Assembly: GCF_006345805.1 (NCBI RefSeq)
Contig: NW_021833025.1
Span: forward strand, 139,218-203,217
From: Octopus sinensis
Taxonomy: Eukaryota
Length of the DNA stretch: 64,000 nt
Reading direction: 5' to 3'
Every line of letters begins with the position of its first letter. The first letter of the stretch is position 1. This document shows positions 1,907 through 54,389 of this stretch, piece by piece. The notes beneath the pieces were generated by a model, which was given only the letters and a program-made list of their open reading frames with translations, had not been told where the DNA came from and searched no databases. Position numbers and translations under genes: made by a program.

Positions 1907-1983
1907 CGACCTTGGTTATTAATACATTGATTTTTTTGTTATTACATCAACTCGAGTTCTATCAACGGCTGACAAATTCGAAC

Positions 1984-3686: not shown

Positions 3687-4020
3687 CATTAATGATTGAT
3701 GCGTCAACACTAATTCTTGCGCGTTCGACGTTAAATAAGAATATTATTTATGATAATGCTGTTAAAGTCATCAAAATATTTAATTAATACCGTTCAATTT
3801 TTCTTTTATTAAATAACTTCATTGTTCAAGGTTTTCCCGATGTTTATAACTAAATTATGTTTTTTTGCTGAATTTTGTCTAAAAGTATATAAAAATTCAT
3901 TAAGGTAACAGAAAACTTTTTAGCTATAGTTATGTCAAATAATAAATTTTTAAATAAATATATTAAATGTATAATATTATAAATTAATATATAAATTCTA
4001 GCCTAGTTTTAATTTAGCAT

Positions 4021-28085: not shown

Positions 28086-28808
28086 GAATGAATGAATGAA
28101 TTTTTTTATTAAAACGGAAAAGCCGAAAAAAGAGAGAGAAAGTTAATGAGACAACGTATGCCTCTTCTCCGTTGTTTCCCTCTTTTTTTTAATTCGAGAT
28201 TCGAGAGGAAAAGGCTCTCTCAAGAACACTTCCAACCGTTTCCGTCGCGTCTTCCATCTCTTGAGGGATGAGTTGGTCCAGCTTGAGTCCATTTGCCAAT
28301 TTGATGGCATATCGTCTCGTCTTTTCGATCTTAGCGATAATGCCATCCCTCTCAGCAGTAGGGTACCATCCCTCGAACCCGTAGGTAAGCAATGGTTCGA
28401 CGCACGTTTTATAAACATATAAAAACGTTTCCGGACAAAGGTGGAAGTGAATTATGCTCCTGAGAATTTAAGCGCATTTCCTTCTCCTCGAGTCGATGTA
28501 TCTGAAGTAAGAACCCTTGGATCCAACTTCAACTCCAAGGTATTTCAGGTTCTCCGTTACTGTAAACCCATAGAGGTTTCTCGGCGGTTTTCGTTTAGCT
28601 CCCTGTTTTCCAATCCAAGTGGCGATGCACTTTTCTTTTGCGAGCGTCAGTCCTTTTGATATGCACCACTCTTCCACTCTTGTCACGTATCCTTTTAATT
28701 TCTTCCACGAGATGTCTTTTCTCCACGAAGCATCCGTTATTAGTATGTCGTCCGCGTAGACCGAGCCTTGAGGTACCCCTCTTTTGAGATCGACAGCTTT
28801 CGACAAAT
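28086..28808 (-). mobile_element. Truncated copy of the (ATTC)n-tailed LINE
   Basis: Matches about 30660-31456, with a (gaat)n tail at 28086 and a 75-nt internal deletion. Confidence 0.88.
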
Positions 28809-28810
28809 TC

Positions 28811-29636
28811 TCCGTGCCAGTTCTACTTTGGTTGTTCATTGTCCTACCACTCAATGCTCAACTATCACTTACGCAGCAATCAAACAAACAGCAGTAAAGA
28901 TTCAACCCATAGAGCCAATCCTTCTACCGAAGATACAGATCTAGTTTGCCAACTTCCCTTACCAGCGTTTATCTATTGACTAGAGGCTGCTAATCTTGGA
29001 GACTTGCTGCGGTTATTGGTACGGCCCAAGTGACTGTTAAACTGTAACAGGCGTTTTATGAAACGTCAGGTGTACACTGGACACAGCAAAAACTGCAATG
29101 CTTTGCGGATATGATCGTAGTGATCAACATCTTCTCTTTCGCTGGCTAAACCATTTCAAGAGAAACCGACACTTTAGAAGAAAAGATAACTCTTCCCAGA
29201 ACACCTGGGACGTCCTAGAACGCCGTCCTAGACTGTTACAACAGCGTCACCGCATAAACAGCCTTCTTAGGTTCGGGAATATTAACCCTATTCCCTTTTG
29301 TACACAGGCTACACTAGCCATTTCAAATGATTTGATAACGTGCTTAGGACCGACTAACTCATGTACAATTTATGTTCACATGAAACCCTTCTCAACATAG
29401 GCCCTCAAAGTTCTCATTTGAGTAATTGCTACTACCACCAAGATCTGCACTAGCGAACAGCTCTATCAGCATTCACATGCTTGGCTTCAGTGCTACCGCC
29501 ACGTCTCTCCTACTCGTCGTAGCCTATCTTTTCTCATTAGCCAAACCCAGTCAAACTGCTACAACGGCCTAGTATAGGTCAAACGCTACAGCGCTATCCA
29601 TTTTCAAGGCCAGTTAATTCGACAGGCTAGTTATTA
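28811..29636 (-). rRNA. 28S/LSU rRNA pseudogene fragment (central region)
   Basis: Conserved LSU blocks: tccgtgccagttct, gagccaatcctt, cttcccttacc, gttcgggaatattaaccctattccc, gctactaccaccaagatctgcac and cgctatccattttca, with many substitutions. Confidence 0.88.
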
Positions 29637-29739: not shown

Positions 29740-31456
29740 TAAGATTCGTACCGTGAAAATAGAGATAAATGATGTCGCAAAAAAACATTCAGACCTTGCT
29801 TGGAAGAGTCAATGCTCGAAACTGAATAAGAAAAACCCTCATTTTTGGAAGGTTTTCAACAGACTGAGTAATATGGAGAACAAAGGAGAAGAGATCCGAC
29901 TAAAAACAACTGAAGGAATAGATATCCCGCTCGATGAAGTTCCCTCACATCTGCGAAGTCAACTGGCAAAAGTTCAAGAGGTGGATCCGATCGACATGGT
30001 TCCGAAAGAAGTTATATGTGAGGCTCAGAGAAGTCTAAGAGCTAATTTGAGTCATACGGGACCACTGTGCAGAGACATAACGTTGGAAGAAACGTATGCC
30101 GCAATTATGAGCTGCAAGAATAATGCACCCGGCCATGACTACATTCCAATTCTGTATTCAAACATGCTCCAAATATTCTCCTACGATACTTGACCGCACT
30201 ATACAATGCAAGCTGGAGACTTGGATACGTACCGGACTCTTGGAAAAAGTCAATCGTACGTATGATTCCAAAGCCTGGAAAAATAAAGGACCATGCAGAG
30301 AACTATAGGCCGATAAGCCTAATATGCTCCGTCTCTAAAATTATGGAACGGATTGTCTTCACAAGACTTTCGAACTTCGTAGAGGAATCAGGTGCACTTG
30401 CAGTAGAGCAGTGGGGATTCCGACGAAAAAGATCCTGTGGTGATTGTTTCGGAGAACTCGAGAAAGTCATCTCGCTTAGTCTTGCTAATAATACAGCGAC
30501 TATTGCTATCTGCCTCGATGTCTCAAAAGCTTTTGACAGCGTATGGCACCTGGGCCTCTTGGAAAGTGTCGCCAAGAGCAAACCCGGGTCTAAAACGGTC
30601 AATTGGCTGAAGAGCTATTTATCAATGAGAAGGTCATACATACGATGCGGAAACCGTTTGTCGGAATCTGTCGATCTCAAAAGAGGGGTACCTCAAGGCT
30701 CGGTCTTGAGCCCCCTGCTTTTTAATATTTACGTTGCTGATATTCCAAAACCGAAAGATCCTACCAGTCGTCTCATGATCTACGCGGACGACATATTAAT
30801 AACGGATGCTTCGTGGAGAAAAGACATCTCGTGGAGGAAGTTAAAAGGATACGTGACAAGAGTGGAAGAATGGTGCATATCAAAAGGACTGTCGCTTGCA
30901 AAAGAAAAGTGCACCGCCACTTGGATTGCAAAACAAGGAGCAAAACGAAAACCGCCGAGAAACCTCTATGGGTTTACAGTAACGGAGAACCTGAAATACC
31001 TTGGGGTTGAAGTTGGATCCAAGGGTTCTTACTTCAGATACATCGACTCGAGGAGAAGGAAATGCGCTCAAATTCTCAGGAGCATAATTCACTTCCACCT
31101 TTCCCCGGAAACGTTTTTATATGTTTATAAAACGTGCGTCGAACCATTGCTTACCTACGGGGTCGAGGGATGGTATCCTACTGCTGAAAGGGATGGCATT
31201 ATCGCTAAGCTCGAAAAGACGAGGCGATATGCCATCAAATTGGCAAATGGACTCCAGTTGGACCAACCCATCCCTCAAGTGATGGAAGACGCGACGGAAA
31301 CGGTTGGAAGTGTTCTTGAGAGAGCCTTTTCTTCTCGAATTAAATTTTAAAAAAAAAAAAAAAGAGGGAAACAACGAAGAAGAGGCATACGTTGTCTCAT
31401 TAACTTTCTCCCTCTTTTTTCGGCTTTTCCGTTAATAAAAATTCATTCATTCATTC
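29740..31456 (+). mobile_element. APE-type LINE, 5'-truncated young copy
   Basis: RT ORF 30190-31350, (ATTC)n tail, 13-bp TSD ataatgcatttta at 29727-29739 and 31457-31469, and one frameshift near 30148. Confidence 0.93.
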
Positions 31457-31537: not shown

Positions 31538-32200
31538 TAATTAGTATGACCCTAGGATAGCGTGTGAATTTCCGCGGACAATTGCACACGAAATCCTCTG
31601 GAAGAGCCACGACGTCTCCCGCGGATCACCTGTTTTTTTGGTGATTAGACCACCCAATCTTCGAATGAACGAAAAACTCTCTGATCCAAAGACTCCGGAA
31701 GTCTCCACAGCGATCGGCTGGAAAAGATATCTGTCTGCCAGGAAAGAGTATTTCTTTTTCTTCAACTCTTCAGAACGTTTTGCAGCAGAGCCAGGAAAGG
31801 ATGCCGAACTTCCGAATGAAGAAGGTCCAAACGTGTCAGGGCAGGTAAAATCCCAAACAAGTGCTTTCCCTCTCGTGTACGGGTAGATAGTTACGCCATC
31901 TGGGCGTTTGCCATCCCCTCTATCGAGACCAGCTGGTTCGAGTTGAGAGTGGAATCCGGCAGCGTCCATGGCCCTTTTGTGATGTCATTGGCGGCGGAAT
32001 GTCGGGGAAAACGACCGGCGCTACGAGTGCAAGAAAGTGGGTGCCTTCCCAATGGACCAATCCTCTTTCCACATTTGCAGGGGTGTGGGGTGCACATCGG
32101 TAAGCCGAGACGTAGACATAGGCCGATCCTAATGGTATCGTCGTCCAGTTTACAGCCGGTAGACGCAATAGGACACGCTATCCTAGGGTCATCATTTTTT
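31538..32200 (-). mobile_element. CRE-like retrotransposon 3' part (zinc knuckle + RLE)
   Basis: HPCKCG..HPLSC..RH, GKRPDG, WDFTCPDT, KKKKY, PIAVETSG and QRISCAIVRGN. Confidence 0.9.
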
Positions 32201-32395: not shown

Positions 32396-35300
32396 CAGTC
32401 CGACCCCCAAATGGGGCACCAAGTGCCCCAAAATGCGGGGGTGCCCCAAAAACAGGGGTTTGTTATTTTTTTAAAAATTAAACCATTAATAAACATCAAA
32501 AAACATTTTTACTAAAATATTCAGTTATTTTCTTTTTATTTGTAGACTTTTGTCTGATATTGAATGAATGAATGAATGAATTTTTTATTAACGGAAAAGC
32601 CGAAAAAAGAGGGAGAAAGTTAATGAGACAACGTATGCCTCTTCTTCGTTGTTTCCCTCTTTTTTTTTTTTTTTTTTTTAATATTTAATTCGAGAGGAAA
32701 AGGCTCTCTCAAAAACACTTCCAACCGTTTCCGTCGCGTCTTCCATCACTTGAGGGATGGGTTGGTCCAACTGGAGTCCATTTGCCAATTTGATGGCATA
32801 TCGCCTCGTCTTTTCGAGCTTAGCGATAATGCCATCCCTTTCAGCAGTAGGATACCATCCCTCGAACCCGTAGGTAAGCAATGGTTCGACGCACGTTTTA
32901 TAAACATATAAAAACGTTTCCGGGGAAAGGTGGAAGTGAATTATGCTCCTGAGAATTTGAGCGCATTTCCTCTCCTCGAGTCGATGTATCTGAAGTAAGA
33001 ACCCTTGGATCCAACTTCAACCCCAAGGTATTTCAGGTTCTCCGTTACTGTAAACCCATAGAGGTTTCTCGGCGGTTTTCGTTTTGCTCCCTGTTTTGCA
33101 ATCCAAGTGGCGGTGCACTTTTCTTTTGCAAGCGTCAGTCCTTTTGATATGCACCATTCTTCCACTCTTGTCACGTATCCTTTTAACTTCCTCCACGAGA
33201 TGTCTTTTCTCCACGAAGCATCCGTTATTAATATGTCGTCCGCGTAGATCATGAGACGACTGGTAGGATCTTTCGGTTTTGGAATATCAGCAACGTAAAT
33301 ATCTCAAGACCGAGCCTTGAGGTACCCCTCTTTTGAGATCGACAGATTCCGACAAACGGTTTCCGCATCGTATGTATGACCTTCTCATTGATAAATAGCT
33401 CTTCAGCCAATTGACCGTTTTAGACCCGGGTTTGCTCTTGGCGACACTTTCCAAGAGGCCCAGGTGCCATACGCTGTCAAAAGCTTTTGAGACATCGAGG
33501 CAGATAGCAATAGTCGCTGTATTATTAGCAAGACTAAGCGAGATGACTTTCTCGAGTTCTCCGAAACAATCACCACAGGATCTTTTTCGTCGGAATCCCC
33601 ACTGCTCTACTGCAAGTGCACCTGATTCCTCTACGAAGTTCGAAAGTCTTGTGAAGACAATCCGTTCCATAATTTTAGAGACGGAGCATATTAGGCTTAT
33701 CGGCCTATAGTTCTCTGCATGGTCCTTTATTTTTCCAGGCTTTGGAATCATACGTACGATTGACTTTTTCCAAGAGTCCGGTACGTATCCAAGTCTCCAG
33801 CTTGCATTGTATAGTGCGGTCAAGTATCGTAGGAGAATATTTGGAGCATGTTTGAATACAGAAATTGGAATGTAGTCATGGCCGGGTGCATTATTCTTGC
33901 AGCTCATAATTGCGGCATACGTTTCTTCCAACGTTATGTCTCTGCACAGTGGTCCCGTATGACTCAAATTAGCTCTTAGACTTCTCTGAGCCTCACATAT
34001 AACTTCTTTCGGAACCATGTCGATCGGATCCACCTCTTGAACTTTTGCCAGTTGACTTCGCAGATGTGAGGGAACTTCATCGAGCGGGATATCTATTCCT
34101 TCAGTTGTTTTTAGTCGGATCTCTTCTCCTTTGTTCTCCATATTACTCAGTCTGTTGAAAACCTTCCAAAAATGAGGGTTTTTCTTATTCAGTTTCGAGC
34201 ATTGACTCTTCCAAGCAAGGTCTGAATGTTTTTTTGCGACATCATTTATCTCTATTTTCACGGTACGAATCTTATCCCGAAGACGAATACGATCTATGGG
34301 GTCACTGCATCGTCTTAGCTTCTTTTCAAGGTTTCCCTTCCATTTTATAAGTTTTCCCAAAGATTCGTCAATCCGGGTTTTTCTGTTAGTATTTGACATG
34401 ATGTATTTCCTGATTGAAGATTTTCGGAGAAAGTCCAGTATAGCTTCTCTGAGAATTTTATCAAGTTTTTCAATTTGTATATTCGAAGAGATGTTTTGTA
34501 TTGGATACGGTGTCAAATGCTTTTTCATTGATACCTCAAGGTCCGACCAGATTGTCCGAGACGTATCGTATCCGATAAACAGATCTTCGCATATCGTAGA
34601 TGATGTTCGCATACACAAGGATTGAGGTAGGTGATCACTACCAATGTTTATCTCAATCCTTGGTATGCTGCATTGATGAACAAGATCTGCCGATACGAGG
34701 AAAACTCCAATACAATCCTCTCCATAACAAGAGAAGTGGTTTGGTTCTCGTGAGGTCAAAACACTAAAACCGCAGTTCTCCGATAATCTGAGGAGTATAT
34801 TACCGTCCGAATTTGTGTTGGCACATCCGTACGATGTGTGTTTTGCGTTAAGGTCTCCTATTAGAATTCCTCTATCATTGTTCTGGAAAAATTCTTCAAT
34901 AAGATTTTGATAATTCTTCATTGCTTTGGAGTACATAGCTCCGACAGATATCCATCCAAGGGATGTTAGTAGTTTCAATGTAATCAGTTCGCACAAATTT
35001 TGTTCGACGATTTTCAAGTCCCTCACCATCAGATTGTCTTTATAATATATGGATGTCCCAGTGCCAGCCACTGCGTCAGGTCGCCATGGGATATCAATCG
35101 ACTGAAAACCATGGATTTTATGATGTTGATTTCCCTTAAGCTTCGTTTCATTAACAACCAATATGTCCATGTTTACCGAGCTAACCAAGTAGGTTAGCTC
35201 CGTAGCCCGTCCATGTTTACTGTCTGATATTGTTCGTCAATTTCAGCCGAAAATCAAAAAATCTCGGAGCATACTTGTGTCAACATTAGAAATTTTTTCT

Positions 35301-37359: not shown

Positions 37360-38260
37360 TTAAAATTTATTAAAATAACACATTAAATAAGGTTTAATAT
37401 TTTCTTTCTTGAAGTTTCTGCCTTTCGCTAAAAGTTTATTTAACATCGAGAAACTTCTTTCGACAGATAATGTGGTTCCCGGACATTTCCATAAATACAC
37501 GAATAATTCAGGAGGGAAATCTCTCAAATTAGCTTCTTGAATGCTATTCCATGGCATTGAATTTGTTCTTTTTTTTAAATATTGTGCAATCTCACATGGA
37601 TCTTCCCCAAAGTCGATAGAATTAATACATTGAATAGCATCTTTAACAGTATAAAAAGTATCTTCACATTTCTTTATTCCTTTGCTTAGACAGTTGTAAG
37701 ATGCTATGTTTGCTAGGTTCCGCTCCAGTGAATCAGAATCTATCGCCTTCTTTGCATTCAAAACAAATTTTCCATTATTCGATAACGAGAAAACAATCCT
37801 TCGGATTTTGTTCAAATGTTTTGAATAATATGTTGCAGCATTAAGCCAGCTGCACCATCTTGTGACAACAACATCTGGAGGTAGACCAAATTCTGAAAAA
37901 AGCTTTTGACGACTTTTATTTTTAAGCGTCACAATCTTTATCGATGATATTAAGAAATCGATGTCTTGATAGTGAGAACGCTTTTTAGTGCACAATTATG
38001 AAGTAAATGGGCGAAACAAGTAAGGTGAATCATATTCGGATAAAATATACGTATGCTAGTTGCGGCTGACATCATATACGGTGCAGCATCAGTTAACAAC
38101 AAAACAAAGTTTTTTCTCTCAACTTGGTAATTTCGTAAGCAATCATCAATTGTTTGACAAATTGAACTTGCATCACACGTCTCAACACAAATACAGTCAA
38201 TTAAATAAATATTGGTTGGGTTGTCAATCTTCCCAGCAATAATGTTCACATATTTTTTTA
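37360..38260 (-). mobile_element. hAT transposase fragment of the CGGBP1-related type
   Basis: LLLTDAAPYM, HLTCFAHLLHNCA, VVTRWCSW and SVERSFSM. Nearby gacctta repeat clusters at about 37005-37080 and 38860-38900. Confidence 0.75.
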
Positions 38261-38338
38261 AAGAATGTTGGGTTTCGTCTATTACTAAAAATATTTGACT
38301 CCCTTTGAAATATTCTTTAAGTTTTTCGCCTCAAGCAA

Positions 38339-38764
38339 GTGGAGGTTGAAAAGTGTCACAAGTATGATCTACTGGCAAGCGAGCTTTCGCTTCTGTATAG
38401 CTTTCAAGTAAAAATAATTCCTGAGGTTATGACATGGGATGGAGTTGTCTCGAAATGCTTCAAAAATTATATGAAGAAACTATCTATTGAAGCAGGAACG
38501 AGGACATACATCCAATCCGTTGTACTGAAAAGAACGCTCGAGAGTATGATGATCGAACACAAGCACGGAATGAAGGTATCTGGTGAAGAATACGCTTCTG
38601 CTTCCAACCGGTATGTGGAGATGGCATGCAAAGGTGAAGACAACCCAATGAATGCTAAAGAAGATGCAATGGTTGAATCAGATGTGGTAATGGGGAGTAA
38701 GAGGCAGCTGGAAGTAGGCTCTTCTTCCAAGAGAAGAAGAGTGGATATCAGCAAGCTGGAGTGA
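38339..38764 (+). mobile_element. R4/NeSL-like RLE retrotransposon 3' end
   Basis: EVEKCHKYDLLA..IIPEVMTWDGVV shows the RLE (E)K..KY and downstream motif. Confidence 0.75.
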
Positions 38765-39141
38765 GATCTGCTTAGTTTCTGATTAACTATTAATTTATTA
38801 TTGTTTGTTAAAATATATAGTTTTGATTAAATGAAAAAAAATATAACTTTATGGAAAAAATATGACCTTATGAAAAAAATATGACATTAATGACCTATAA
38901 AACTACATCGAAAGTAAATAAAAATTAATTCAAAAGTTATTCTAAGTTTTGTTGGAAAATGTCTTCATAATCACCTCAATGATCCTCGTCTCCTGGAATT
39001 TTTCTCCTCTTGGGAGAGCTTTCCACCAACGCACCATCAGCACTTTCATTCTCCGAACACAAGATTTTCCCTAAATAAAAATATAATAATAATTTAAAAT
39101 GATGGAAATAATAAACTAACAATTCTTTTTTGATATGACTT

Positions 39142-39145
39142 CTCT

Positions 39146-39178
<33 letters not shown>

Positions 39179-39510
39179 CTGAACTCGTGCATTCATTTAG
39201 TCTTAAGTGAAGCTTTCCACCCACTTTAGCTTGCACTCACAAGCAAGCCGACTCTAACGATGCTTGCAGGCATACGTACACAGTTACTACAGGCCTTTCA
39301 CCTTCTCTGGGAAGTCCATTTCGATAGAACTTGGTACCGTATACATTTCCTAATAACACTGCAAACGCCACAGTTCGTAGTTTAACTACAATTCGACGAT
39401 GGACTATTCCCAATTCATTCGCCATTACTACGGGAATCCCGGTTGGTTTCTTTTACTCCGATTAATGATATGCTTAAGTTCAGCGGGTAGTCATGCCTGG
39501 CTGAGGCTGG
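39142..39510 (-). rRNA. 28S/LSU rRNA 5' fragment (D1-D2 start), pseudogene
   Basis: Reverse strand reads acccgctgaacttaagcata ... gcgaacaagtaccgtgagggaaagttgaaaa, then stops abruptly. Confidence 0.92.
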
Positions 39511-39674
39511 TTCAAATTCACTAGCTATTTATTTCATCACCAAACATAACCAAATTGGTAGTGATTCAATAAATAACACTAAATTAGTGTAATAAATGCA
39601 AACAGTCAATACATACGCTAATCATCTTCAAATACACAGCTCGACACGTAACAATTGTTATGCCACTACAGGTA

Positions 39675-39712
39675 CACGCTCAACCAGACCATCCCACTCG
39701 GTATCCAAGCAC
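39675..39712 (-). rRNA. 3' remnant of 5.8S rRNA (rest deleted)
   Basis: Reverse strand gtgcttggataccgagtgggatggtctggttgagcgt resembles the 5.8S 3' end. The conserved gatgaagaacg core is absent between here and the SSU. Confidence 0.55.
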
Positions 39713-39868
39713 AAAAATCAAAAGGACTACCACCTGTTTGAGTCTAACAACTCTACGGTAGTCACCCTTATGGCTGGCTTTGCCTAACTTGAACTTCTCA
39801 ACAGAACCAGACACAAATTAGCTAACTGCACGCAAGCAGCAACCAGTTAAACGACTACATCGTCTCAG

Positions 39869-40472
39869 TAGTGATCCTTCTGCAGGTTCACCTTTAGAAA
39901 CCTTGTTACGACTTTTACTTCCTTTAAATGAGTAAGCTCGGGTGTCTTCTTGCATGCTATAGCACACGATCCAAAAACCTCACCAAATCATTCATCGGTA
40001 GTAGCGATGGGCGGTGTCTACAAAGAGCAGGGATGTAATTATTGCATGCTAATGACCTGCGATTATTAGGAATTCCTTGTGCACGAAGAATAATTACAAG
40101 CTGTCCTGCCACGAAAAAAATTTCAAGGCTTAGTTCGCTTTTCCAAGCAAAACCCCCCTTGCTTTCTTCATTGTAGCACGCGTGCGGCCCCGAACGTCTA
40201 AGGGCAATCACCGACATTTTATTGCTCATTTTCAAGTGTTTTTTACACTGATCCTTCTTAGTAGTCGAAAACTAGAATCGAAAGACTAGTAAGTAAGTCT
40301 GAGTTTCGTTCGTTATCGGAATAAACCAGACAAATCACTCCACCAACCAACAACGGCCATGCACCACTACCCACAGTATCAAGAAAAAGCTATCAGTTTG
40401 TCAATCCTCACTGTGTTCGGCCCGGGTGAGTTTTTCTGCGTTGAGTCAAATTGAGCCGCAAGCTCCACTCCT
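39869..40472 (-). rRNA. 18S/SSU rRNA 3' third, pseudogene
   Basis: gatccttctgcaggttcacc, aaccttgttacgactttt, gggcggtgt.tacaaag, acggccatgcaccac and gagtcaaatt.agccgca.gctccactcct; truncated upstream. Confidence 0.95.
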
Positions 40473-40739
40473 CAATTCTAAGAGCATCCACACGTCACTC
40501 AAATATCCGGTAGAAGCATTACCTGCGACTTGACCTTCTGAGGACAACTCGATTCCAAAATTTCTTGTAAAAATTTTCCTTGCAAAATTGATTTTTCCCT
40601 AAAAAAACATTTGTCTTCCACAACTTTATAAAAATTGCCTTTAATCATGCATAGCTTGACTATTTCAATATACAAATACTGCCCTACCTTCGTAGTACTA
40701 AAGACTGTAAGGCTTGTTGATGGGGTTAGTAAATAACTA

Positions 40740-41178
40740 AAGTACTATAAGATCAATCAAAACTTATAAATATCTCGAATAATTCCATTTACGCGGCATA
40801 TGAGAGCCAGGATAAAATAAACATCCACTGAAGGACAAAAAAGACGACGTTCTAAAAGTAGTTGAAAAAATACTTAAGGGCACTTAAAATATAAATGAAT
40901 GTTGACTTACTTGTCTACTGATCCAAAGTGTTAGTAGCAAATTTTCACTTCTCCAGGAATCTTTGTTCAGTTTAAAGTATAGCTGGTGTGCAGAAAGTGC
41001 TGGAAGTGAAAATAATACCTATTTATTAACTTGGGATGGGCTGATAACTCAAAAATTTCTACAATATGAACGTTTGCTTAACATCAATGAGAGAACGCAT
41101 GAATATTTTCAATCACTAACAACAAAGAAAATCCTCGATAGCATTATTGTCTTTTTTAGAAACACAGTTGAGCCGTAA
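40740..41178 (+). mobile_element. Degraded R4/NeSL-like RLE retrotransposon
   Basis: YLLTWDGLITQK...YFQSLTTKKILDSI is homologous to the 38339 copy. Confidence 0.6.
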
Positions 41179-41429
41179 GAAAGGATGTTTGAACTGGACA
41201 AAAGAAGTTTGGATTAGGTCGGTGTGTTGATCACAGTGAAGTTGAATCTTGTTTGTCTTAAATAGACGATTCTAAATTGGATAATTCTTTAGTTGGGAAT
41301 ATAAAACTGGAGCCTGTTCCTTATAAAGAACCCAAAGAAAACTGTCAAAAGCAGTTTGATAAATGGTTTCAACACTACTTTTATGAAACTAAGCTCCGTT
41401 AGAAGTTCTATTTTTATAATTCTATCTTT

Positions 41430-41773
41430 AATTCTATTTTTAACTATGAATTTAATCTTCCAGGGAGAGTACGATATCGGAGATTTGAACATCTGCCTAA
41501 ACCTGAAGTGCACAAGATTAATTCATAAAATAGCTGCATTGTGATCGTCGTACTTGTGCTCAACGCGCAAGATTGATCCATTTCCTCCAAATGTGATCAA
41601 ACATCCAATATCCTTTAGGTTTGCTGAGAAAAAAGGTTCCTCACCGAGGTCACTTGCTTTATCATCCTCAACAACAACCTGAATGCTGTTTTCTTTTTGA
41701 AAAGAGATAAACTGTTCACGAATTTTTTTGATAAAAAATTTTTAGCTCAGGGGAAAAAGACCATTGTTTTCAT
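41430..41773 (-). pseudogene. ppnK: Bacterial-type NAD kinase pseudogene (N-terminal half)
   Basis: MKTMVFFP ... IQVVVEDDKASDLGEEPFFSANLKDIGCLITFGGNGSILRVEHKY...AIL*INLVHF..ADVQISDIVLSLED. GGDGT has decayed to GGNGS; stops and frameshifts; no introns. Confidence 0.72.
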
Positions 41774-42332
41774 TGGACTTTGGCAGTTTGTCTTGAAAAA
41801 GTCTTTAAGACCTGTATAGGAATATTGTCGAGGGAAAGTCCAAATCTTTTTAACAAATCTTCATCACTACCATGCTGCACAAATTCTTAAGAAACTCCAA
41901 AGTTTTAAATGAGTAAATGAGTCAAGTCTTCTTAGACGATAAAAGATTTGATAATCAATCATATGAGACCTTGAAGTGCATTTTCTTTAATTGTAACAAT
42001 ACCTCGAGAGTTTTCAAAGTGTCTTTTCAGGAACTTTGTATCCAAAGGTTTAACAAAAATCGGGTCAATGACGGTACCATCAATGCCTTCTAACAAACAA
42101 AAGTTCGCATGTTTGCATAGCAATATTCACCATGTAACCCAGAGCTACTATCGTCAGATTTTTTTAAAAAATTTTCCCTCGCCAAAAGGAACTTGTTCGA
42201 TTGGAATCTACCTTCTTAAGTTAGGATACTGGATAGCAGTTGAAAGGTTCCATTCAAAAAGACTTTCTAGAAAAATCTTTAGCATATTCCCATCTCTAGG
42301 GTGCGTGATGACCATATTTGGCGCGGATTTAA
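41770..42332 (-). pseudogene. dxs: Bacterial 1-deoxy-D-xylulose-5-phosphate synthase pseudogene (C-terminal domain)
   Basis: APNMVITHPRDG..LESLFEW..TAIQYPN, LTIVALGYM, GIDGTVIDPIFVKPLD, IVTIKENALQG and NFGVS*EFVQHGSDEDLLKRFGL, with several stops and frameshifts. Confidence 0.82.
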
Positions 42333-43524
42333 ATTATTTAATCATCAAAATTATTTAATAAATATTTCAAATGTAGCAAGCAGCCTAGTGAGTGATTCCA
42401 GTTTTTAAATGTTTGAATTTTTCATAAAATTCATCTGTTTATATTTCTCTAAACTGTTAATCAATTAGAATAAAAACTCTTCTCTTTAAAGTTAGATTAT
42501 TTGAATTTTTTAGCATAAAACGTGTATTAGAGAAAACTGGTCATTGGCAGATAGCCAGAGTATTTCCTCTGACTATGGCTATGGATATTCTTTTGGTTAA
42601 ATACCGGTGCTCACACGGGTCGCGGGTAACCCTTTCCATTAGTGAGCCAATCCGCTGGAGCAGGCTCCGAGTAGAAGACCCGAAAATTGAAATTTGGTTG
42701 TATATATAATTACATCTTGACTAAAAATGATTATATTCCCCCTGAATTATTTTATATTTCCAAATTTAATTATCTAAATTGGCCATTAATCCCAGCAGGA
42801 ATCTGAATTAAAATTTGTACATTTTAAAATTAAAAGCAATTAGTAGTTAGTTATTTAGATCAAATGTTAAAATAACATCTATAATGTAAGTTTGTTTAAT
42901 AAAATTAAAAAATTATTATTCCTTTTTTTTAAAAATTATTATTATTCCAAATACAATTTTATATTAAAAAAAGTATAAAAAAGTAAAAATAGCATTTTAT
43001 CAGTAAAATCGTTCTACTGATAAGCATGTCATTAAAGAATATTCAACGTGTTGATTATGATTAATCATGTCATTACTAAATTCGAAATAAGATAAAATAG
43101 TTTAATTTGGCACTATTAAAGGATTCAGTTTAGATTTTTGGTATATTCTGAGGATACATCAAATTGTTGACAAACTAGGTTAAATCAATGAGACAGAAAT
43201 AATACTTTATTGATGGGGATTTGATACTAAGATCAAATTCTTTACTAAAACTGCTTTATTTATATTAATCTTTATGGAAACTCTTGTTGTTTCCCTTGAG
43301 ACTTAATTAAGTAATTAAAACTTCTGGTTCACAATCTGTGAGGCTGGGAGGGCGTCCTAAACTGCGTAGTCTTAAACAAACTTCCTCCTTTTCTAACTTA
43401 ACTTTTGTAAACAAATTTATATTTTATAAATTAATATACGATTTAATATTTAAATTATCAATAACTTGCGGTTGTCCTGGCGATGCGTGCCATATATAAA
43501 ATGTCTAATTAATACGAATTATCA

Positions 43525-46500
43525 ATGCGTGGTAGCTTCAGGAAATCGTTAAATCCAGGTAATTAATAAAAAAATTCAAGTTTAATTCAGAGACAGAAAG
43601 AACTGTTTTGTCAAACACTGGGACTCAACAGTGCACGCCATTTTGCGTAAAAGTCTACTTTTCTATTCTAGACCAACCTAATTATTACCTCAAAGTATAC
43701 GTGGTATTCATTTTTACCAATAAATATGTATGAACAATTCTCGAGGGTTTCCAACGCTTATTTTTTAGTATTAATGATTTTACAAGTTAATTAAATATTA
43801 AAATTCAGTTAATTCCGGGAATATCGTCATTATCTCCACTTACAACAATATTTCCCCTATTTATTGTGATTAGTCTGTCTGCTATAAAAGATATATATGA
43901 CGATTACGTGAGGCATAAGAACGATGACGAAGTCAATAACCGACATTGTTTAATTTTCCGTGATGGAGAATATTCCCCTGTAAAGTGGAGAGATGTGGTA
44001 GTGGGTGATATTCTCAGACTCTCAAGTGAAGAGAAAGTGCCAGTATTTTTTCACTATCTTCATTTCCAGGCTGACATTGTGTTACTTAGTACCAGCGACG
44101 ACGGAATTTGTCTTGTCGAAACAGCGGAACTTGATGGGTTGCCATTAATTAACAAATTTGTGCAGAGAAACAAACTTGAAGACTCGAAATGCTCTTCCTT
44201 CCACTGTTCAGAAGTTCGCTTCTTCTAATTTGGATGATTACCTTCTAAAAGTGTCATCAGAACTGCCAAATAAAATACTTGACAAATACGAAGGAACTCT
44301 TCAAATGCAAGACGATTCCATATTTTCATTAAGCAACGAAAATGTGGTTCTTCGTGGTTGCGTAATTCGGAACACTGCTAATGTAGTTGGAATGGTTATT
44401 TTCACTGGATGTGACACAAAAATTATGATGAACTCTGGAAAACTCCGTTTAAAGCGGACACATCTTGATATGTACGTCAATACAGTCATCATGCAGGTTT
44501 CTTTTAATTGCTATTGGCAGATACTCATTTTCCTCGTTACTTCCGTTGTTGTCCTTATCATTGGGCAGGGGATTTGGGAGAAAATTTTTGGTGTCGATTT
44601 GAGATTGTATCTTCCCTGGGCGGAGTATCTTCCGTTGAATGTCGATAGTGCAATCACAGTAAAGTCTATTTTATCTTTCTTCTCTTTTGTTATTATTATG
44701 AATGCCATAATCCCGATTTCTCTCTATGTGAGGTCTGTTTTAATATCCATTTTCGTAGTGTTGAATTCATTCGTTTTTGGCAGTCACTTTTTATTAACTG
44801 GGACTTGAGAATGTGTGATTCTAACACGGGGACTTTCGCCAAAGCCCGAAGCACTAACCTTATTGAGGAATTGGGGCAGATTCAGTATATTTTCAGCGAC
44901 AAGACCGGCACCCTAACTCAAGTTTGGCTATTTGGAAAATATTTTAAGAATTTGATGAAATTTAGACAATGTTCTATTAAAGGTGTCAAATATATGGAAT
45001 TTCAGGTTTTTCTTTGCATTTACCATGGTAGGAAAAGGAACTGCGGGATCAAATTCTGGGAAATGATGATACAACTAGGCTTTTTATGGAAATACTGTCA
45101 ATCTGTCATACTGTCATGGTTGGGAACGTTAATTACGGTATTGAATTTATTGTGTTTTTAGATAGTACTCCTAATTTTCAGGCACAGTCGCCTGACGAGG
45201 GAGCTCTAGTTGAGGCAGCATGCTATTATGGATTCATATTTAAGGTTTTAGCACAAAAACAACTTTAGAGTCGAAAGAATGGTATAATTGAAATCGAAGT
45301 CAACGGGACTTCACTTTATTTCGAAATATTGGCAATCCTTGACTTTGACAATTTCCGAAAAAGAATGTCTGTTGTAGTCCGTAGAAATGGGAAAATCACG
45401 TTATTCTCGAAAGGAGCCGACACTACGATATTTCAGGTTCTATCCTCATCCAATTCCGAGTCACTTCGTAGCACTACAGAACAACACTTAAATGTAATAG
45501 TTAATGTAATTTGGAGGACTTTGCTTGTTCTGGACTCAGGACTCTTTGCTTTGCCTATAAGGAGATTAAAATAGAGGATTGGAATCGATGGTTTAGTGAC
45601 TATTCTGCTGCCAGTTTGTCTTTGACTGACAGATCTGGGATGATAAATCACTGTATCATGGAACTAGAGAAGGACCTGATTCTTTTGGGTGCCACGGGAA
45701 TCGAGGACAGATTACAAGACAACGTGGCCGATACTATTTCGTCAATTACTGCTGCAAAAATTAGAATTTGGGTACTCACGGGAGACAAATTGGGTTGCTA
45801 ACCTACTCTTTACAACTCAGAGACCGCTGTAAATATCGGGCATTCTTGCAGTTTGTTAACAAATGATATGTACGGAGTCTTCATGCTGGACAGTGAATTT
45901 AGGGATGAGGTTAAATCAAAACTGGATGGTTTTATAAACAACATCCATCACTCTCTAATGAAAATGGATATTGATTATTACCAATTCCGAGATGCATATA
46001 ACACTTTTTCGACGTGTTTTGACGGATTCCTAGGTTTTTCCCTGGTAATCACAGGCCAGGCATTGGTTTGCCCAGATTAAACTGATTCTTTTTAGGATAT
46101 TGCTCTCAGTAATTATGCCCAACTATTTGTTGAATTGACCAGTTGTTGCAAAACAGTGATTTGCTGCAGAGTCACGCCCCTACAAAAGTCACAAGTAGTC
46201 TGCTTGATCAAAAAACACAAGAAAGCGATAACACTTTCTATCGGAGATGGGGCCAATGATGTCAGCATGATCAAAGGTGTTGCGAGAGTTGAATTTACTT
46301 TAGCTGCCGATATTGGAGTTGGTATATCTGGTAAGGAAGGAAGACAGGCAGTGTTAGCTTCAGATTATTCTATCAGCCAATTCTGCTTTCTCAAGTATCT
46401 CCTCTTGTATCATGGACGTCTCTCATATTTTCGGATGTCAGCTTTTTTGTCATATTTTTTCTACAAGAGTTTCAGTTTTGCATTTGCCCAGTTCATTTAT

Positions 46501-47359
46501 GCATTTTTTTCCGCCTTCAGTGCTCAAGTCTGGAGGTTTTGTGATTTTGTAGATCTTCTATCATGTTATTTTTATGGCAACCTACAATTTGGTTTATACT
46601 TCGGTTCCCGTGCTTGTCATGGCTATTCTGGACAAGGTATATTGTGCTCAATTATCTTTCTGGATGTTCTTAACCCAGAAATGGCCACTGATCCAAAATT
46701 GTACGATTCAGGTCTAAGAAATCGGCTCTTTAACAAAAAAATATTTTTTCTGTCGGCATTTGAGGGCTGTGTGACTTCACTGGTTATCACTCTCTTCACA
46801 TACCTTGCCTTCAATGACGGGGTCGATTTAAGCGGGAAAACAATAGATGATCTCTACACAGTTCAACACGTGGGAATGACTTTACTCACTTTCGTGGTCA
46901 CATTTAGAGTTTTTTTGGATATTTGATTATAGTGTGCTTTGTACATGAGTTCTTGGACTTTTTTTCATCATTCTACAATATGGCTGTCAATTCTAGCTTA
47001 TTTCGTGGTCGTTCTTTTCCTCAGTGGGGATATTGTAAAGAGTACCGCTATTGGAGCAGCCTTCACAGTCTTGCAATCTCCTATTTTTTGGTTTTTGCTA
47101 CCATTGGTAATGACTTGTCTGCTTATGCCTGTTGCTGCTTATAAGTATCTTATTTTTTCTATTTGTGAAAGGGCTGTTCATTCTCACTTCCATCCTTCAT
47201 ATGCACGCGAGTTAGTGATGAATCCTAAAAGGAAGATACCGAAGACGACATGGAGTCGGCGTCGCGGATATGCCTTCTCTCAGGAAGAAGTATTGGCAGT
47301 TTTGGTTATATTCTTAGACTGCTATTGGAAAAAAATATATTAAGAATTCGGCTTGCTAG
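43525..47359 (+). CDS. ATP8B: P4-type ATPase (phospholipid flippase), ATP8B-like, many tiny introns
   Basis: TSKY, YEQF, DGETNLK (across a 28-nt intron), [71 protein letters not shown] and YFFYK. Confidence 0.95.
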
Positions 47360-48930: not shown

Positions 48931-49189
48931 TTGATAAGACGTCATAAGTTTCTAGTCTTTACAGCTCTAAGCCAATAAAAATAAAACTTTAAATACAAGA
49001 GAAACTCATTCATGGCTCAATTCGGAATTAATAAACTTGTTTTCTAATTATTTCGGACAAATCAATTAGGACCTGTCGAAATAATAAATGGACATAATAT
49101 GTCGGGTGAACTGAATTAATCCTGTCAAGTATGTAATCCTAGTGTCAGCGTGGGCCTCGACATAATAATACTGAGCACATGAAAAAATC

Positions 49190-49712
49190 GCACATGAAAA
49201 AATCGAGGATTACCTGTCAAAATACAAGATATCGATTGGTTGGCTTCAAGAGACTAAAATATCAGACGGGATAGAAGAACTGCATGGTGATTATAGACTA
49301 ATAATTTTTTTAAAAGATTCTAAACACTGAGTTCGATTCCGAAGGAGGCAGTTTTCATCCTGGGGCCAATTCTCGTTATCGTTCCCCTGCCCGTGAGGCA
49401 ACGAGTACTTCTGGCACGACACAGTTGGAAATGGGGATCTCTTATCTTCCTTCCGGTCTTAGCGTGGCGTTATGGGTTCCACCATGTCAGTTGGAAAATT
49501 CCATTCGGATATGGCAACGCTCAGGAGGCACTTAATGCCTACCGAAAAAGGACTTCTAGATCTCAGACCCTGGGACATCGTCGTCTCAGGCCGATCATGC
49601 GGGCAGGATCGAACCTTTCAGTAGGATCTCCCTCGTTCGGATCGGCGATCACGGGAATTATTATAATTAACTGGCTTACCCGTCTTTGGTCTTTAATAAA
49701 TAAATAAAATAA
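49190..49712 (+). mobile_element. Internally deleted LINE relic
   Basis: KIEDYLSKYKISIGWLQETK resembles the start of an APE domain, followed by a GC-rich segment and a (TAAA)n tail. Confidence 0.45.
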
Positions 49713-49727
49713 ACACTAAGAAATGGC

Positions 49728-50187
49728 GGTACTTTTGTCGAAGTGGTCGCAGTTTTTTTTGAAGATAATTAAAATTAATTAATTTTTCTTTTGTCGAAGT
49801 GGTCGCAGTTTTTTTAGGCCTTTTAAAAAATCTAATAATTTTTGAGGTGGAATATATTATATTTTATTTAAGTCGCTCTATCAATAATTTAAAATATTAT
49901 TAAATTTTTTACTAATTTATTTTCTAATTTTGTTAATATTATGGCGAGCATGTACCTAATATTGATATAAACTGGCACTATAGGTCACATGGAAAATTCT
50001 GTTGTGGACTTATGCAACATCAAATCCGACAGCTCCCAATAAGTAAGGAGGATGCAGTGCATTTTCTGTTAATAATATTTTAAATTATTGATAGAGCGAC
50101 TTAAATAAATATAATATATTCCACCTCAAAAATTATTAGATTTTTTAAAAGGCCTAAAAAAACTGCGACCACTTCGACAAAAGTACC
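49728..50187. mobile_element. Fold-back MITE, Merlin-like
   Basis: TIR ggtacttttgtcgaagtggtcgcag, about 110-bp inverted arms, and 8-bp TSD gaaatggc. Confidence 0.8.
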
Positions 50188-50735
50188 GAAATGGCTTTGT
50201 TGTAAGAAACAACACAGCTCACAAAATCTACCGCTACTAGACTATCAACGTCAGGACCTGGAAAGATATTTGTTCTCCTAAAGAATAGAGTCGGCTAGAC
50301 TCGTGCCTTCGTTAGATTCTTACATTAACAAAACATTTCATTACACACCAGAACAAATAGATCCACATTTATGGCATTTTTTAAAAAATTTGGCATACAA
50401 CATTGCATCGACAAAAAATTCACCTCCGAGTAAATAGAAAACGAAGGAACAGCCAATGAAATTATATATTTCATACATGAATAGAAATACTTCATTCAGA
50501 ATTTTAGGTGGAAAGAATGTGAGGTCGGAAATGAGGCTTCAATACCGATCAGAACATTAAGAAAAGAAAATTAGAATCATTTTAATTACGAAAAACTATT
50601 CGTAATGAAAGAAAAACTTTCACAAACTAGAATAAGGATAGAAAACGATAATAATAAAAAATAGTTTTATAGTCAATTTAATAAGTTAAAATTCCGTACT
50701 GAATCAAAAATTGAAAGAACCGCCGTAATTTAGCC

Positions 50736-51860
50736 CTATAAGTTCTCTATCATAGCATATCCGAAACGCACTATCCCGACAAACGACTCTCTCCGCATCC
50801 ATGGAATGGCGCTCTTCTCAGGTACTATGGTCAAGACCTTCTCTACTGTCAACTTCTTTAGCATTGCAATGTATGACTCAAGTCGTCTCCAAGACCAGGA
50901 AATCCTATTTAAGGTATCCATGATCAAAATGCCATCAGCATATATGATGAGTTTTCCAGTACGTATGTCAGCCAGAACGAAGTTGAAAAGAAGTGGACTC
51001 AAGACCAATTCATGTGGGACGCCCCTTCTAAATTCTACACACCCTGATAGGCATTCCCCGCAGCAAACAAAAAATTTCCTTTCAGACAAATAGCTCTCCA
51101 GGCATCGATAGATCTTCATTTTTGCTCCGGTTTCATAAACTCCCGCAAGTAGGCTTGGGTTCCACACGTTATCAAAAGCTTTCGCGAGGTCCAAACACAC
51201 CACAGTTACCAAGCTTTATTACTGTAAGCACGGGATAGTTGGTCCTTTAAATCCTTCGGGGAATCGCTATTGTATGGGTGAAAACAAATTTTGTGATTCC
51301 ACATAACAAGAAAATTTGTTACAGACAATCTTTTCCATTGTTTTAGAGAAAGCACAAATAAGATTAATTACTCCTAACAGTGTCGATTTACCCGATTTTT
51401 GTATCATTCGAACGATTGTATGCTTCCATGCTAGTAGAACGTATCCAAACGTCCAACTAGCGTCAAACATCATAGTCAATGCTCGTATCAGAAGTTCAGA
51501 GGCCCTTTTTAACAATATCTGAGGGATGTAGACGAAACTAGGTGCCTTGTTCTTCAACCCGGCAATTACCTTTTCGACCTCTTCTGCGTTATCTCCCACA
51601 AAAGATTCATCCAACAAATGCCAAAAGTCAAGTTTTTTCACAGGTCCTTCGTGAAACAGTAGATTCGACCTCTTTAACTTGACTGAGTTGATTCCTGAGT
51701 GCGTCCAGAACACGATCGGAGCAGATATATTTTCCATCTGGTCCTTTGAGTGAAATTTCAACTCCTTTGACATTATTTCTGCTAAGGGGTTGGAATGGTT
51801 TCCAGAAGTTAGGATTTTGTTTATCTAGTTTTTTGCATTTCGACTTTCATTTACTTTCGA
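50736..51860 (-). mobile_element. Degraded LINE of the 23690 family
   Basis: LKNKAPSFVYIPQ, LDLAKAFDNVW, RRGVP..LSPLLFN and YADG. Confidence 0.85.
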
Positions 51861-51953
51861 TCTCAGCCTTATTTTAAAATTTAATATTTATTAATATTTT
51901 GGATTCAATATCTTTATTTTTAAATTTATTCATTCATTTGAATTCAATGCTTT

Positions 51954-52286
51954 ATGCAAGACCTTACAAATTTAAAATTTGAGGAGCAAGTATATAAAAT
52001 AACTAAGCAAATACCAATTGGAAAAGTGTCAACATATAAATTAGTTGCTGAGACTCTTGGACGCCCTAAAGCTTTCCGTGCAGTTGGACAAGCGTTGAAA
52101 AAGAACCCATATGCACCCGCAGTTCCATGCCATCGTGTTATTAAATCCGACTTTTCATTGGGGGGATTTAATGGAAATCTCAGTGGACCATTTCTTCAAA
52201 AAAAGATAGAACTTTTAAAATCCGAAGGAGTATCGTTTTTAAATGGTAAAGTAAACTCTAAATTTGTTCATGATTTTAAAGATTGA
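51954..52286 (+). CDS. ogt: Single-domain O6-alkylguanine-DNA alkyltransferase (Ogt/MGMT family), intronless
   Basis: Intact 110-aa ORF with IPIGKVSTY, RAVGQAL..NP and the active-site VPCHRVI; no N-terminal domain. Confidence 0.92.
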   Translation: MQDLTNLKFEEQVYKITKQIPIGKVSTYKLVAETLGRPKAFRAVGQALKKNPYAPAVPCHRVIKSDFSLGGFNGNLSGPFLQKKIELLKSEGVSFLNGKVNSKFVHDFKD

Positions 52287-52392
52287 ATTTTTCAACACTT
52301 ATATTTTGACATTAAGTTGCATTTTTTTAATAAAAAGAAACTAATTAACTAATCAATTGTCTAACCAAGTCTTGAGCTTCAAAATGTAAGGG

Positions 52393-52790
52393 GTGGCATT
52401 CTACACATTTTCGTCCTTTCTTCCTCTTCAGGAAAAGAGTGGATCGGCGAGCATCAAAGGAGATACTTTTCCATTCAGCAAGGGGAAGTGTCTCGTCTGG
52501 GATGTAAGTTGTGCGGACACCTTTGCTCCGGGGACCGTAACCCAGTTTGCGTCGTGTCCTGGCTTCGCGTCTCGCTGGGCCGAGGAAAACAAACGGAGGA
52601 AGTACGCGTCGCTTTCTGACGCGTACCACTTCGTCCCAATCGCCGTAGAGACGATCGGCGTGATTGGGCCCGAGGGGATGAGGATTCTTTCGTTGATCGG
52701 GAAGCTCAATGGAAAAAAGACTAATTACTCCCGGAAACCAGTTGGCTGTATCAGAGGGTTTGATAGCAATCTTGCGGGATAACTCGTTTG
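52393..52790 (+). mobile_element. CRE-like RLE fragment
   Basis: VWDVSCADT, KRRKY and FVPIAVETIG. Confidence 0.85.
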
Positions 52791-52808
52791 CTATCCTGAT
52801 TTGATTAA

Positions 52809-53233
52809 TTATTTACACCAAACTGTTTTAAGTACAACTTTTGGTATTTGGGGACCAGTCATCACACACGGAATGACATGGATTTTACACATGTGTATCA
52901 GCTTAAACTCGTTTGCAAGGAAGTCATATTTCCTGCTTTTTTCCACACGTGATACCATCTCGACGATAACAATCTCCCGGTGAAGGGAGATCCCTGGGGT
53001 ACTCCGTTGGACAGGAGTCGAGACGTGCATTTCCGGCACACCCTTCCCATTCTTCCACTTAGAAGGTTGGTTATCCATAGTTTAAATTTCGGCGGAAATT
53101 CAGTTTGGAATATCTTCCTTGATAGGAGCTTCCTCGAGACAGAGTCGAAGGCTTTGTGAATGTCTACGGGGCAAAGCACTGTCTTTTGGTGCTTTGGTTT
53201 GCTTGAAAAACCAGTACAAATGAATTCCGTCAA
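52809..53233 (-). mobile_element. Fused relics: APE-LINE RT piece and R4/NeSL-like RLE piece
   Basis: VDIHKAFDSV..NGVPQGSP, then VEKSRKYDFLANE..VIPCVMT. Confidence 0.65.
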
Positions 53234-53524
53234 TGACTGTATTTATGAAGAGGTAGACTTCGACTTCTTGAACCAAAAAGAGTGTGAATTTTCCAAATTC
53301 CAGTTCTTACAAGAAACGTGATTTCAAGTTAATAGCGAAATGTTTCGGAGAAAAACATTTTACTTTATTGATGCATATAAACTATTAAGTGACATTAAGT
53401 TGGTGGTCTGAAACTATCGGCAAAAATATACGACGGATAAAATAACACAAAGTATCATTTAGAATTAAAAACACCAATCAATGAATTTATTAGTTTTAGA
53501 TAATAACCGAATCATGTTAAAATA

Positions 53525-54052
53525 TTAGTTGACAGGCTTAACTCCTGACTTATACCATGGAAGATCGTCGACTGTCGTCTCAAATTCATTAAGCTGGCTT
53601 TCCTCCCCACTTAACTCGTCATCACTCTTTCCTGATTCGGTACCAGAATATTTGCTAATAGAATCGGGATCAATGCCACAGTATTTGTCACCCAATTGAA
53701 TGCCTAATAAATAATTAATACAATGAACTTTTTGTAAATTTTGGAGTATTGAAGGTAGTCAGATCTTCGTCCTTTATGTTGAACTGTAATTTCAATTTCG
53801 AGATTCTAGTTTGGAGATCATTGTAAGCATTCTTGTCAAGGGTTTCGAATCCACCAGATTGACTAAAAAATTTGTAATGAATAGACTATACAGAAGGGAC
53901 CGAACTTCTTTTATTTTATCTACAAATAGCTGTTGAATTGGATCTTTAGACTTTTGATACATTGGATATGAGATTCCAATATTTTGTTTCAGTGAGTGGT
54001 AAATAAAACTTAAAGGTAGAGACTTGGATAGCAGCATTCTTAAACCAAGCAT
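53525..54052 (-). CDS. ATP5PF: Mitochondrial ATP synthase coupling factor 6, with a possible acidic C-terminal exon
   Basis: NIGIS..KDPIQQLFVDKIKE, then QSGG...DLQTRISKLK..DLTTFNTPKF. It ends at 53715 if the last intron is retained, or at 53525 if the 25-nt intron 53704-53728 is spliced. Confidence 0.85.
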
Positions 54053-54389
54053 TTGACCACCAGAAGACTAAGCACAACTCAAATAAAATATAATTGATAT
54101 CATTAATGTGAATTATTATTAAAAAACCATAAACTATAAAATTTATATTAACAACATTTACAAACGAGAATTATTTTTTCATACATTTTAAACAAGATTT
54201 CCTGGGTTTTCTTTCCGGAAAATCACACTTAAACTCGGAGACTATGGGACACCAAACACTACTGGTTTCCGACCTGATCGCTTAAGAAGAATATTATACC
54301 TCTTGCGACTTTCGAGCGTAATATGTGATTGAAACAATAACTTTTATTTAGTAAAACCCTTTTAGATAAAAAAAGGGAGTTTAAATAGT

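Follow-up and report, generated by a model that had tools for sequence, protein, structure and literature searches.

We report the remains of a chlamydial chromosome fragment inside a eukaryotic contig that is filed as Octopus sinensis. The window analyzed here is a stretch of 64,000 nucleotides, the last 64 kb (139218-203217) of the 203,217-bp contig VCDQ01008158.1 (GCA_006345805.1); an exact protein match places it on this contig, and 6.3 kb of the VCDQ01008158.1 record is identical to window positions 48954-55286. The bacterial DNA totals about 1.15 kb and lies in two blocks, the first holding the end of dxs and the beginning of nadK and the second a piece of an adjoining gene (Table 1). 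Judged from its sequence, the donor is a Simkania-like chlamydia of the family Simkaniaceae (Chlamydiota). Our preferred account, which we hold to be probable, is that a single Simkaniaceae fragment was inserted in the germline of a small marine animal, most likely a dicyemid, and then decayed neutrally.

Table 1. Features in and around the bacterial relic, in window coordinates. L087 is the metagenomic contig of a near relative of the donor.
Feature	Position	Strand	Basis or extent
Decayed eukaryotic rDNA fragment	39146-40476	-	Rfam SSU_rRNA_eukarya 357 + 105 bits, LSU 147 bits
Transposable-element protein tail relic, adjoining the end of the bacterial DNA	41023-41151	+	tblastx to 38426-38554
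Chlamydial hypothetical-protein gene relic (block 2)	41190-41409	+	~codons 168-241 of 672-aa ORF, blastn to L087
Internal deletion junction	41410-41420		two collinear blastn blocks
nadK 5'-part relic (block 1)	41416-41773	-	~codons 1-119 of 280
dxs/nadK ATGA overlap	41770-41773	-	nadK ATG 41773-41771, dxs TGA 41772-41770
dxs 3'-end relic (block 1)	41770-42345	-	~codons 434-630 of the 630-codon L087 dxs
Transposable-element protein C-terminal relic	42550-42687	-	tblastx 50% over 46 aa to ORF 31541-31969
P4-ATPase (flippase) gene, apparently intact	43597-47343	+	homologue search, spliced translations

Remnants of a dxs-nadK operon

The original prediction described a fossil dxs-ppnK operon with a coupling overlap at 41430-42332. 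Pfam and NCBIfam matches and the ATGA at 41773-41770 bear out the operon, and the limits are near-exact for block 1 (41416-42345); the bacterial DNA continues to about 41190, in a second block that had been missed. Block 1 (42345-41416, minus strand) comprises the last ~195 dxs codons and the first ~119 nadK codons, that is, the last third of one gene and the first 40% of the other. All of the peptides quoted in the prediction are found on the minus strand, with MVITHPRDG..WNLSTAIQYPN at 42315-42208, VIDPIFVKPLD inside 42123-41959, and VQHGS..TAKVQ, ending in the stop, at 41880-41770.

When its pieces are stitched across frames, with X at stops, the dxs relic matches positions 435-613 of the 616-position NCBIfam profile TIGR00204 (E 5.7e-23). 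At 81 bits, the score for the whole protein falls far short of the 466-bit cut-off because only one third of the gene is present. The same piece matches Pfam Transketolase_C (PF02780, E 2.7e-16). Homology begins at about codon 434, and dxs 5' sequence, which would encode the N-terminal thiamine-diphosphate and pyrimidine-binding domains, was found nowhere in the 64 kb. The dxs piece is a gene relic and not a DXS. The nadK relic matches NCBIfam NF002984 at positions 16-110 of 277 (E 4.9e-9) and is 68% identical in amino acids to protein P0122; its match to Pfam NAD_kinase (E 4.8e-4) scores 20.9 bits and so does not reach the 25.5-bit gathering score. The C-terminal domain of NAD kinase (PF01513/PF20143 architecture) is deleted from the relic, and the GGDG motif, which is invariant across 25 bacterial sequences, reads GGNG.

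As predicted, both genes are riddled with lesions, amounting to 8-9 premature stops and 4 frameshifts. The dxs relic keeps its natural stop (TGA 41772-41770) and has acquired TAG 42210-08, TGA 41961-59, TAA 41934-32, TAA 41907-05, and TAA 41889-87; an additional TAA (42336-34) is located at the homology edge, giving 5-6 premature stops in this gene. The three in nadK are TGA 41749-47, TGA 41525-23, and TAA 41454-52. Frameshifts are found at ~42165 (-7) and ~42097 (+1) in dxs and at ~41724 (-1) and ~41497 (-1) in nadK, and dxs has also lost 9 nt in frame at ~42205.

The donor is a Simkania-like chlamydia

The stitched pseudo-DXS has a single match in the protein database, P0001, at 55%. The contig encoding P0001 (L001, from a bacterial metagenome) has the gene order xseA-xseB-dxs-nadK and the same GTCCAATGAAAACAAT junction between the last two genes. 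On this '2x' metagenome contig, dxs and nadK (1908-4462) are each broken into two or three called genes, which are probably low-coverage long-read frameshifts and not true pseudogenes. When prokaryotic species were scanned with a single genome for each, Simkania metagenome-assembled genomes (MAGs) matched best and other Chlamydiae next. All non-chlamydial matches were at 40% or less, and the best non-chlamydial DXS match is at most 32% identical in amino acids. A neighbor-joining tree of the DXS C-terminus groups the window with three Simkania MAGs in 100/100 bootstrap replicates, and the NadK N-terminal tree places it within the same Simkaniaceae-like clade at 65%, for a short piece.

We searched for a near relative of the donor by scanning metagenomes with a degenerate 37-nt pattern spanning the operon junction, which returned one contig, L083 (JGI Ga0180433_10000305). 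A second contig, L087 (ENA ERZ27256773, 85.7 kb), belongs to the same organism and carries a complete dxs. The NadK of L087/L083 is 87% identical to that of S. negevensis Z. Positions 7404-8338 of L087 correspond to window 42333-41416 at 82.9% DNA identity (blastn), compared with only 66% between the relic and S. negevensis Z and only 68.7% between the relic and locus L088. The chlamydial donor named in the original prediction can thus be narrowed to the Simkaniaceae by the DXS tree and the ~83% DNA identity to L087. That this donor lived as an endosymbiont, as was also proposed, is a supposition that we share.

The operon junction itself points to the same group. Its ATGA stop/start overlap is, as read from the sequence, a bacterial translational-coupling junction, and GTCCAATGAAAACAAT is identical in L001, L083, and L087. 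The 4-nt overlap of dxs and nadK is present in the gene coordinates of S. negevensis Z, L087, and L088, and by sequence in L001. The adjacency of the two genes in relatives, which the prediction had proposed to check, is general: nadK directly follows dxs in all 19 chlamydial loci extending far enough, at a distance of 0-45 nt in 18 of them and 137 nt in the nineteenth (L017). In non-chlamydial loci nadK is 0.9-1.4 kb from dxs, or absent. The motifs named in the prediction as chlamydial also hold, AIRYPN and DPIFVKPLD occurring in 21 of the 21 chlamydial loci fetched, with the caveat that IFVKPLDE was among the scan patterns that fetched these loci, so that the DPIFVKPLD count is biased; AIRYPN is absent from the non-chlamydial loci.

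The xseA-xseB-dxs-nadK cluster of S. negevensis Z (FR872582.1) and related Simkaniaceae has gene order, the ATGA overlap, and signature motifs in common with the relic. Unlike that cluster, the copies in the window are partial and dead, and their closest identity is to the L087 lineage. An origin from an apicoplast or plastid-type eukaryotic DXS was considered and is ruled out by the bacterial operon junction and the collinear neighboring gene described below.

A second block and an internal deletion

In L087 and L083, nadK is followed on the opposite strand by an ORF of 672-680 aa (L087 8837-10855, minus strand; L083 1060-3102). It has no Pfam domain that we could find, and it is bordered by nadK on one side and by a run of Legionella_OMP-family genes on the other. 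Block 2 derives from this gene: L087 10132-10347 corresponds to window 41405-41206 at 82.4% DNA identity (blastn), and the relic peptide, GLGRCVDHSEVESCLS followed by a stop and then IDD..LVGNIKL..KQFDKWF, aligns with L087. The stop is a premature TAA, and the block also holds a 16-nt deletion. Since S. negevensis Z and L088 have no such gene after nadK, we regard the 672-aa gene as lineage-specific and as a marker of the donor.

The two blocks keep the order and orientation that they have in L087, where 1793 nt separate them; in the window they are about 10 nt apart. The missing ~1.79 kb corresponds to about L087 8339-10128, comprising what is left of nadK together with the 3' portion of the adjoining gene. 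Because the blocks are collinear in L087 but lie 1.79 kb apart there, the insert must once have spanned at least 3 kb of donor chromosome, the middle of which was lost later. The rest of the 64-kb window gave no further match to 18.8 kb of L087 and the chlamydial loci.

The relic decayed under host mutation

The window differs from L087 about evenly at codon positions 1, 2, and 3, by 18.9, 12.9, and 16.5% (chi-square p 0.12). The corresponding figures for two live genomes, L087 and S. negevensis, are 18.1, 7.7, and 54.2% (chi-square p 9e-42). Block 2 is similarly even, at 12.1, 10.4, and 10.4%. When changes are polarized with S. negevensis, the window lineage accounts for 105 and that of L087 for 25, 15 of the latter at third positions. 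GC>AT changes outnumber AT>GC changes by 94 to 28, and the GC content of the relic is 35.2% against 42.9% for L087, the flanks being at roughly 30-33%. The even spread over codon positions, the GC>AT bias, and the lesions together indicate neutral decay inside a eukaryotic genome rather than a contaminating read. By this sequence evidence, which agrees with the decay after integration put forward in the original prediction, the relic DNA appears to have decayed neutrally once integrated and to have no present function.

Third positions are no more divergent from L087 than the others, an oddity in DNA that has changed at about 16% of its sites. The donor and L087 would therefore have been nearly identical at synonymous sites, and the host would mutate far faster than the bacterium, or an extra mutational process would be at work. 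We considered decay driven by CpG methylation and rejected it, as C>T changes are no more frequent at CpG (23%) than at CpT or CpC; the CpG observed/expected ratio of the window is 0.92. C>T changes affect 31 of 133 TpC sites (23%) versus 21 of 167 ApC or GpC sites (12-13%) in the comparison of 41416-42333 with L087 7404-8338 (Fisher p = 0.02). This excess might reflect either sampling noise or a mutational process that depends on context. Paired with its near-donor, the relic provides a clean sample of the neutral mutation spectrum of the host, which is strongly GC to AT and without a CpG effect.

The insert is flanked by eukaryotic sequence

Eukaryotic sequence begins within 0.2-1.3 kb of the relic on either side of the same contig, and both junctions are known from one PacBio-based contig, VCDQ01008158.1. 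A retroelement relic and an intron-containing flippase locus had been described as the flanks, and both are present; the low-coordinate side additionally holds a decayed rDNA fragment that was not mentioned. This fragment has the same strand as the relic, whose end is 0.7 kb away. It consists of an 18S 3' part (40476-39877), a spacer of ~320 nt in which no 5.8S match was found, and a 28S 5' part (39555-39146), and some of its normally invariant positions bear substitutions.

No DNA-level repeat of the flanking sequence (38000-43900) occurs elsewhere in the window. A Pfam search of both strands of 40477-41460, and of 42340-43870 on the minus strand, found no domain. Carriage of the fragment by a transposon could therefore not be shown.

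Transposable elements are plentiful further away. Several copies of LINEs in the window encode endonuclease and reverse-transcriptase domains. Two are copies of one LINE in opposite orientation (29753-31350, plus strand; 33287-35188, minus strand), and they have long identical peptide stretches in common, which suggests that the family was recently active. Two more 28S rRNA fragments lie inside the LINE cluster at 28792-29436 on the minus strand (Rfam positions 1456-1888 and 1909-2343) and could be rDNA carried by an rDNA-targeting retrotransposon.

The contig most likely belongs to a dicyemid

The flippase gene starts about 1.2 kb from the relic and its reading frame is clean, which indicates that the local sequence quality is good. 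It is interrupted by four GT..AG introns of 23 nt (43786-43808), 28 nt (44138-44165), 23 nt (45494-45516), and 25 nt (46528-46552). Splicing these out restores conserved P4-ATPase motifs, namely LQ/LIPGIS, LDG/ETNLK, HLN followed across the junction by ten residues not printed here, and FSAQ/IFYH..YNLVYTS (a slash marks the junction). A gene model chosen for the fewest introns and no stops gave misleading introns of 33-56 nt, and we set it aside in favor of junctions checked by homology. At full length, no match exceeds 46-48% identity, and the best ones are those of dragonfly, shark, nematodes, rotifer, and human. There is no mollusc among the 120 best matches listed, nor was a near-identical protein found in the public read assemblies searched.

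Among 51 metazoan genomes, introns of less than 30 bp are on record only in myxobolid myxozoans and Dicyema japonicum (PMC13644364). The median intron is 27 bp in Dicyema sp. (PMC6543705) and the mean is 38 bp in D. japonicum, which was collected from O. sinensis and whose genome has many LINE copies and a repeat content of 49% (PMC6736024). The introns of 23-28 nt and the lack of a close mollusc match therefore make a dicyemid the most likely source of the contig. Judging by these features, it is most likely DNA of a dicyemid kidney parasite of O. sinensis that was carried into the octopus assembly. The assignment is indirect, being drawn from intron length, divergence from molluscs, and sample ecology. 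The original prediction of an animal chromosome accordingly holds in that eukaryotic flanks are found on the same contig, with the qualification that the contig filed as O. sinensis is most likely a dicyemid one. The 203 kb RefSeq O. sinensis contig is very probably mislabeled parasite DNA, and if so, its flippase, homeobox, and MGMT-like genes are wrongly attributed to the octopus in RefSeq.

Proposed history and alternative explanations

We propose that at least 3 kb of a Simkania-like chromosome would have been inserted once in the germline, starting in the middle of dxs, taking in nadK, and reaching into the gene that follows. The insertion site is an intergenic stretch rich in transposons, ~1.2 kb upstream of the flippase gene. 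By analogy with Wolbachia-type transfers, insertion may have occurred by end-joining at a break and the donor would have been intracellular in this host. The insert would have become fixed in the germline. As the fragment was truncated at both ends from the outset, it would never have been able to make DXS. It would then have drifted under the AT-biased mutation of the host, gaining stops and frameshifts and losing 1.8 kb from its middle. What remains would be functionless and would mark a past (or present) close association with the bacterium.

A read from a live Simkania-like bacterium might have been misjoined into a eukaryotic contig, with long-read errors passing for lesions: the assembly is PacBio-based, going by the title of Li et al., 2020, a contig from a minor organism may have low coverage, and low-coverage contigs of the L001 type show frameshifts in these same genes. 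Such a misjoin would, however, have to account for only 1.15 kb of bacterial DNA that carries a 1.8 kb internal deletion and is enclosed by eukaryotic sequence lying no more than about 1 kb away on either side. The changes are mostly substitutions, biased 94:28 from GC to AT and even over codon positions, unlike the indel-rich profile of long-read errors, and the flippase gene 1.2 kb away is clean through four exact GT..AG introns. We therefore judge an assembly artefact to be very improbable. A role for the fragment after insertion, as promoter-proximal regulatory DNA or as a non-coding RNA for the flippase, would fit its position upstream of that gene and antisense to it. The neutral-like substitution pattern at all three codon positions, the deletions, and the drift toward the AT content of the flanks speak so strongly against co-option that we give it hardly any credence.

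The remaining alternatives accept the insert and differ on the host. Octopus genomes are rich in LINEs and hAT-type elements, like the window in its LINE content, and the contig was deposited and annotated as O. sinensis, so that it might be genuine octopus nuclear DNA. Orthologues from O. bimaculoides or O. sinensis itself would then be expected at high identity, but no mollusc is among the 120 best flippase matches listed and the best of these reach 46-48%; introns of 23-28 nt are moreover reported among animals only for dicyemids and myxobolids. An octopus host is thus highly unlikely. Another small-intron associate of the octopus, such as a myxozoan or an unsampled parasite, is a somewhat more serious candidate, given that myxobolids too have introns below 30 bp and that the dicyemid identity was reached indirectly, but we still regard it as unlikely. 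The window has a homeodomain protein (E 1.5e-18), abundant LINEs, and an animal-type P4-ATPase, and D. japonicum, collected from this very octopus species, matches it in repeat content and LINE load. A dicyemid bearing a neutrally decayed Simkaniaceae insert thus remains our preferred reading.

Relation to known bacterial inserts

The relic resembles the nuclear Wolbachia inserts, or 'genomic fossils', of nematodes and insects, including those of Dictyocaulus viviparus (PMC4046930) and filarial nematodes (PMC12693587), which are likewise dead fragments of an intracellular bacterium with stops and frameshifts that attest to a past association. It differs from them in its Simkaniaceae donor, its apparent dicyemid host, and its size, a single relic of ~1.15 kb compared with up to megabases. 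Chlamydia-derived genes of plants and algae (PMC2376095) are another case of chlamydial DNA in eukaryotic nuclear genomes. Those genes are ancient, expressed, and functional, with plastid roles, whereas the relic is non-functional, fairly recent, and in an animal. The kind of fossil insert is thus already known, and the combination of donor and host is unreported: in the literature searched, we found no paper linking dicyemids with chlamydiae or Simkaniaceae with octopus.

Fossils of bacterial DNA are a known route to detecting past symbioses, and a living relative of the donor lineage can be identified here. Because nearly all differences between the relic and the intact 85 kb metagenomic contig come from the decay of the former, the donor lineage would still be extant. 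We suggest tentatively that dicyemids might carry, or might fairly recently have carried, an intracellular Simkania-like chlamydia whose DNA entered the germline. Were this so, more such relics would be expected in the dicyemid genome, it should be possible to detect Simkaniaceae in dicyemids or the renal sacs of octopus, and a three-level association of bacterium, parasite, and cephalopod would await description. For dicyemids, a parasite phylum of which little is known, the relic would give the first indication of a chlamydial partner.

Other genes in the window

A single-exon homeodomain ORF of 184 aa is located at 17387-17941 on the plus strand (Pfam Homeodomain, E 1.5e-18) and is very rich in N, K, and Y. 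Exact-sequence matches were found neither for this ORF nor for a 96-aa ORF over the relic. Further along, an intact intronless ORF of 110 aa (51954-52286, plus strand) consists of only the catalytic/DNA-binding domain of O6-methylguanine methyltransferase (PF01035, E 1.2e-28), including PCHRV. The usual MGMT proteins of animals are much longer than this ORF, which the NCBI record lists as a gene.
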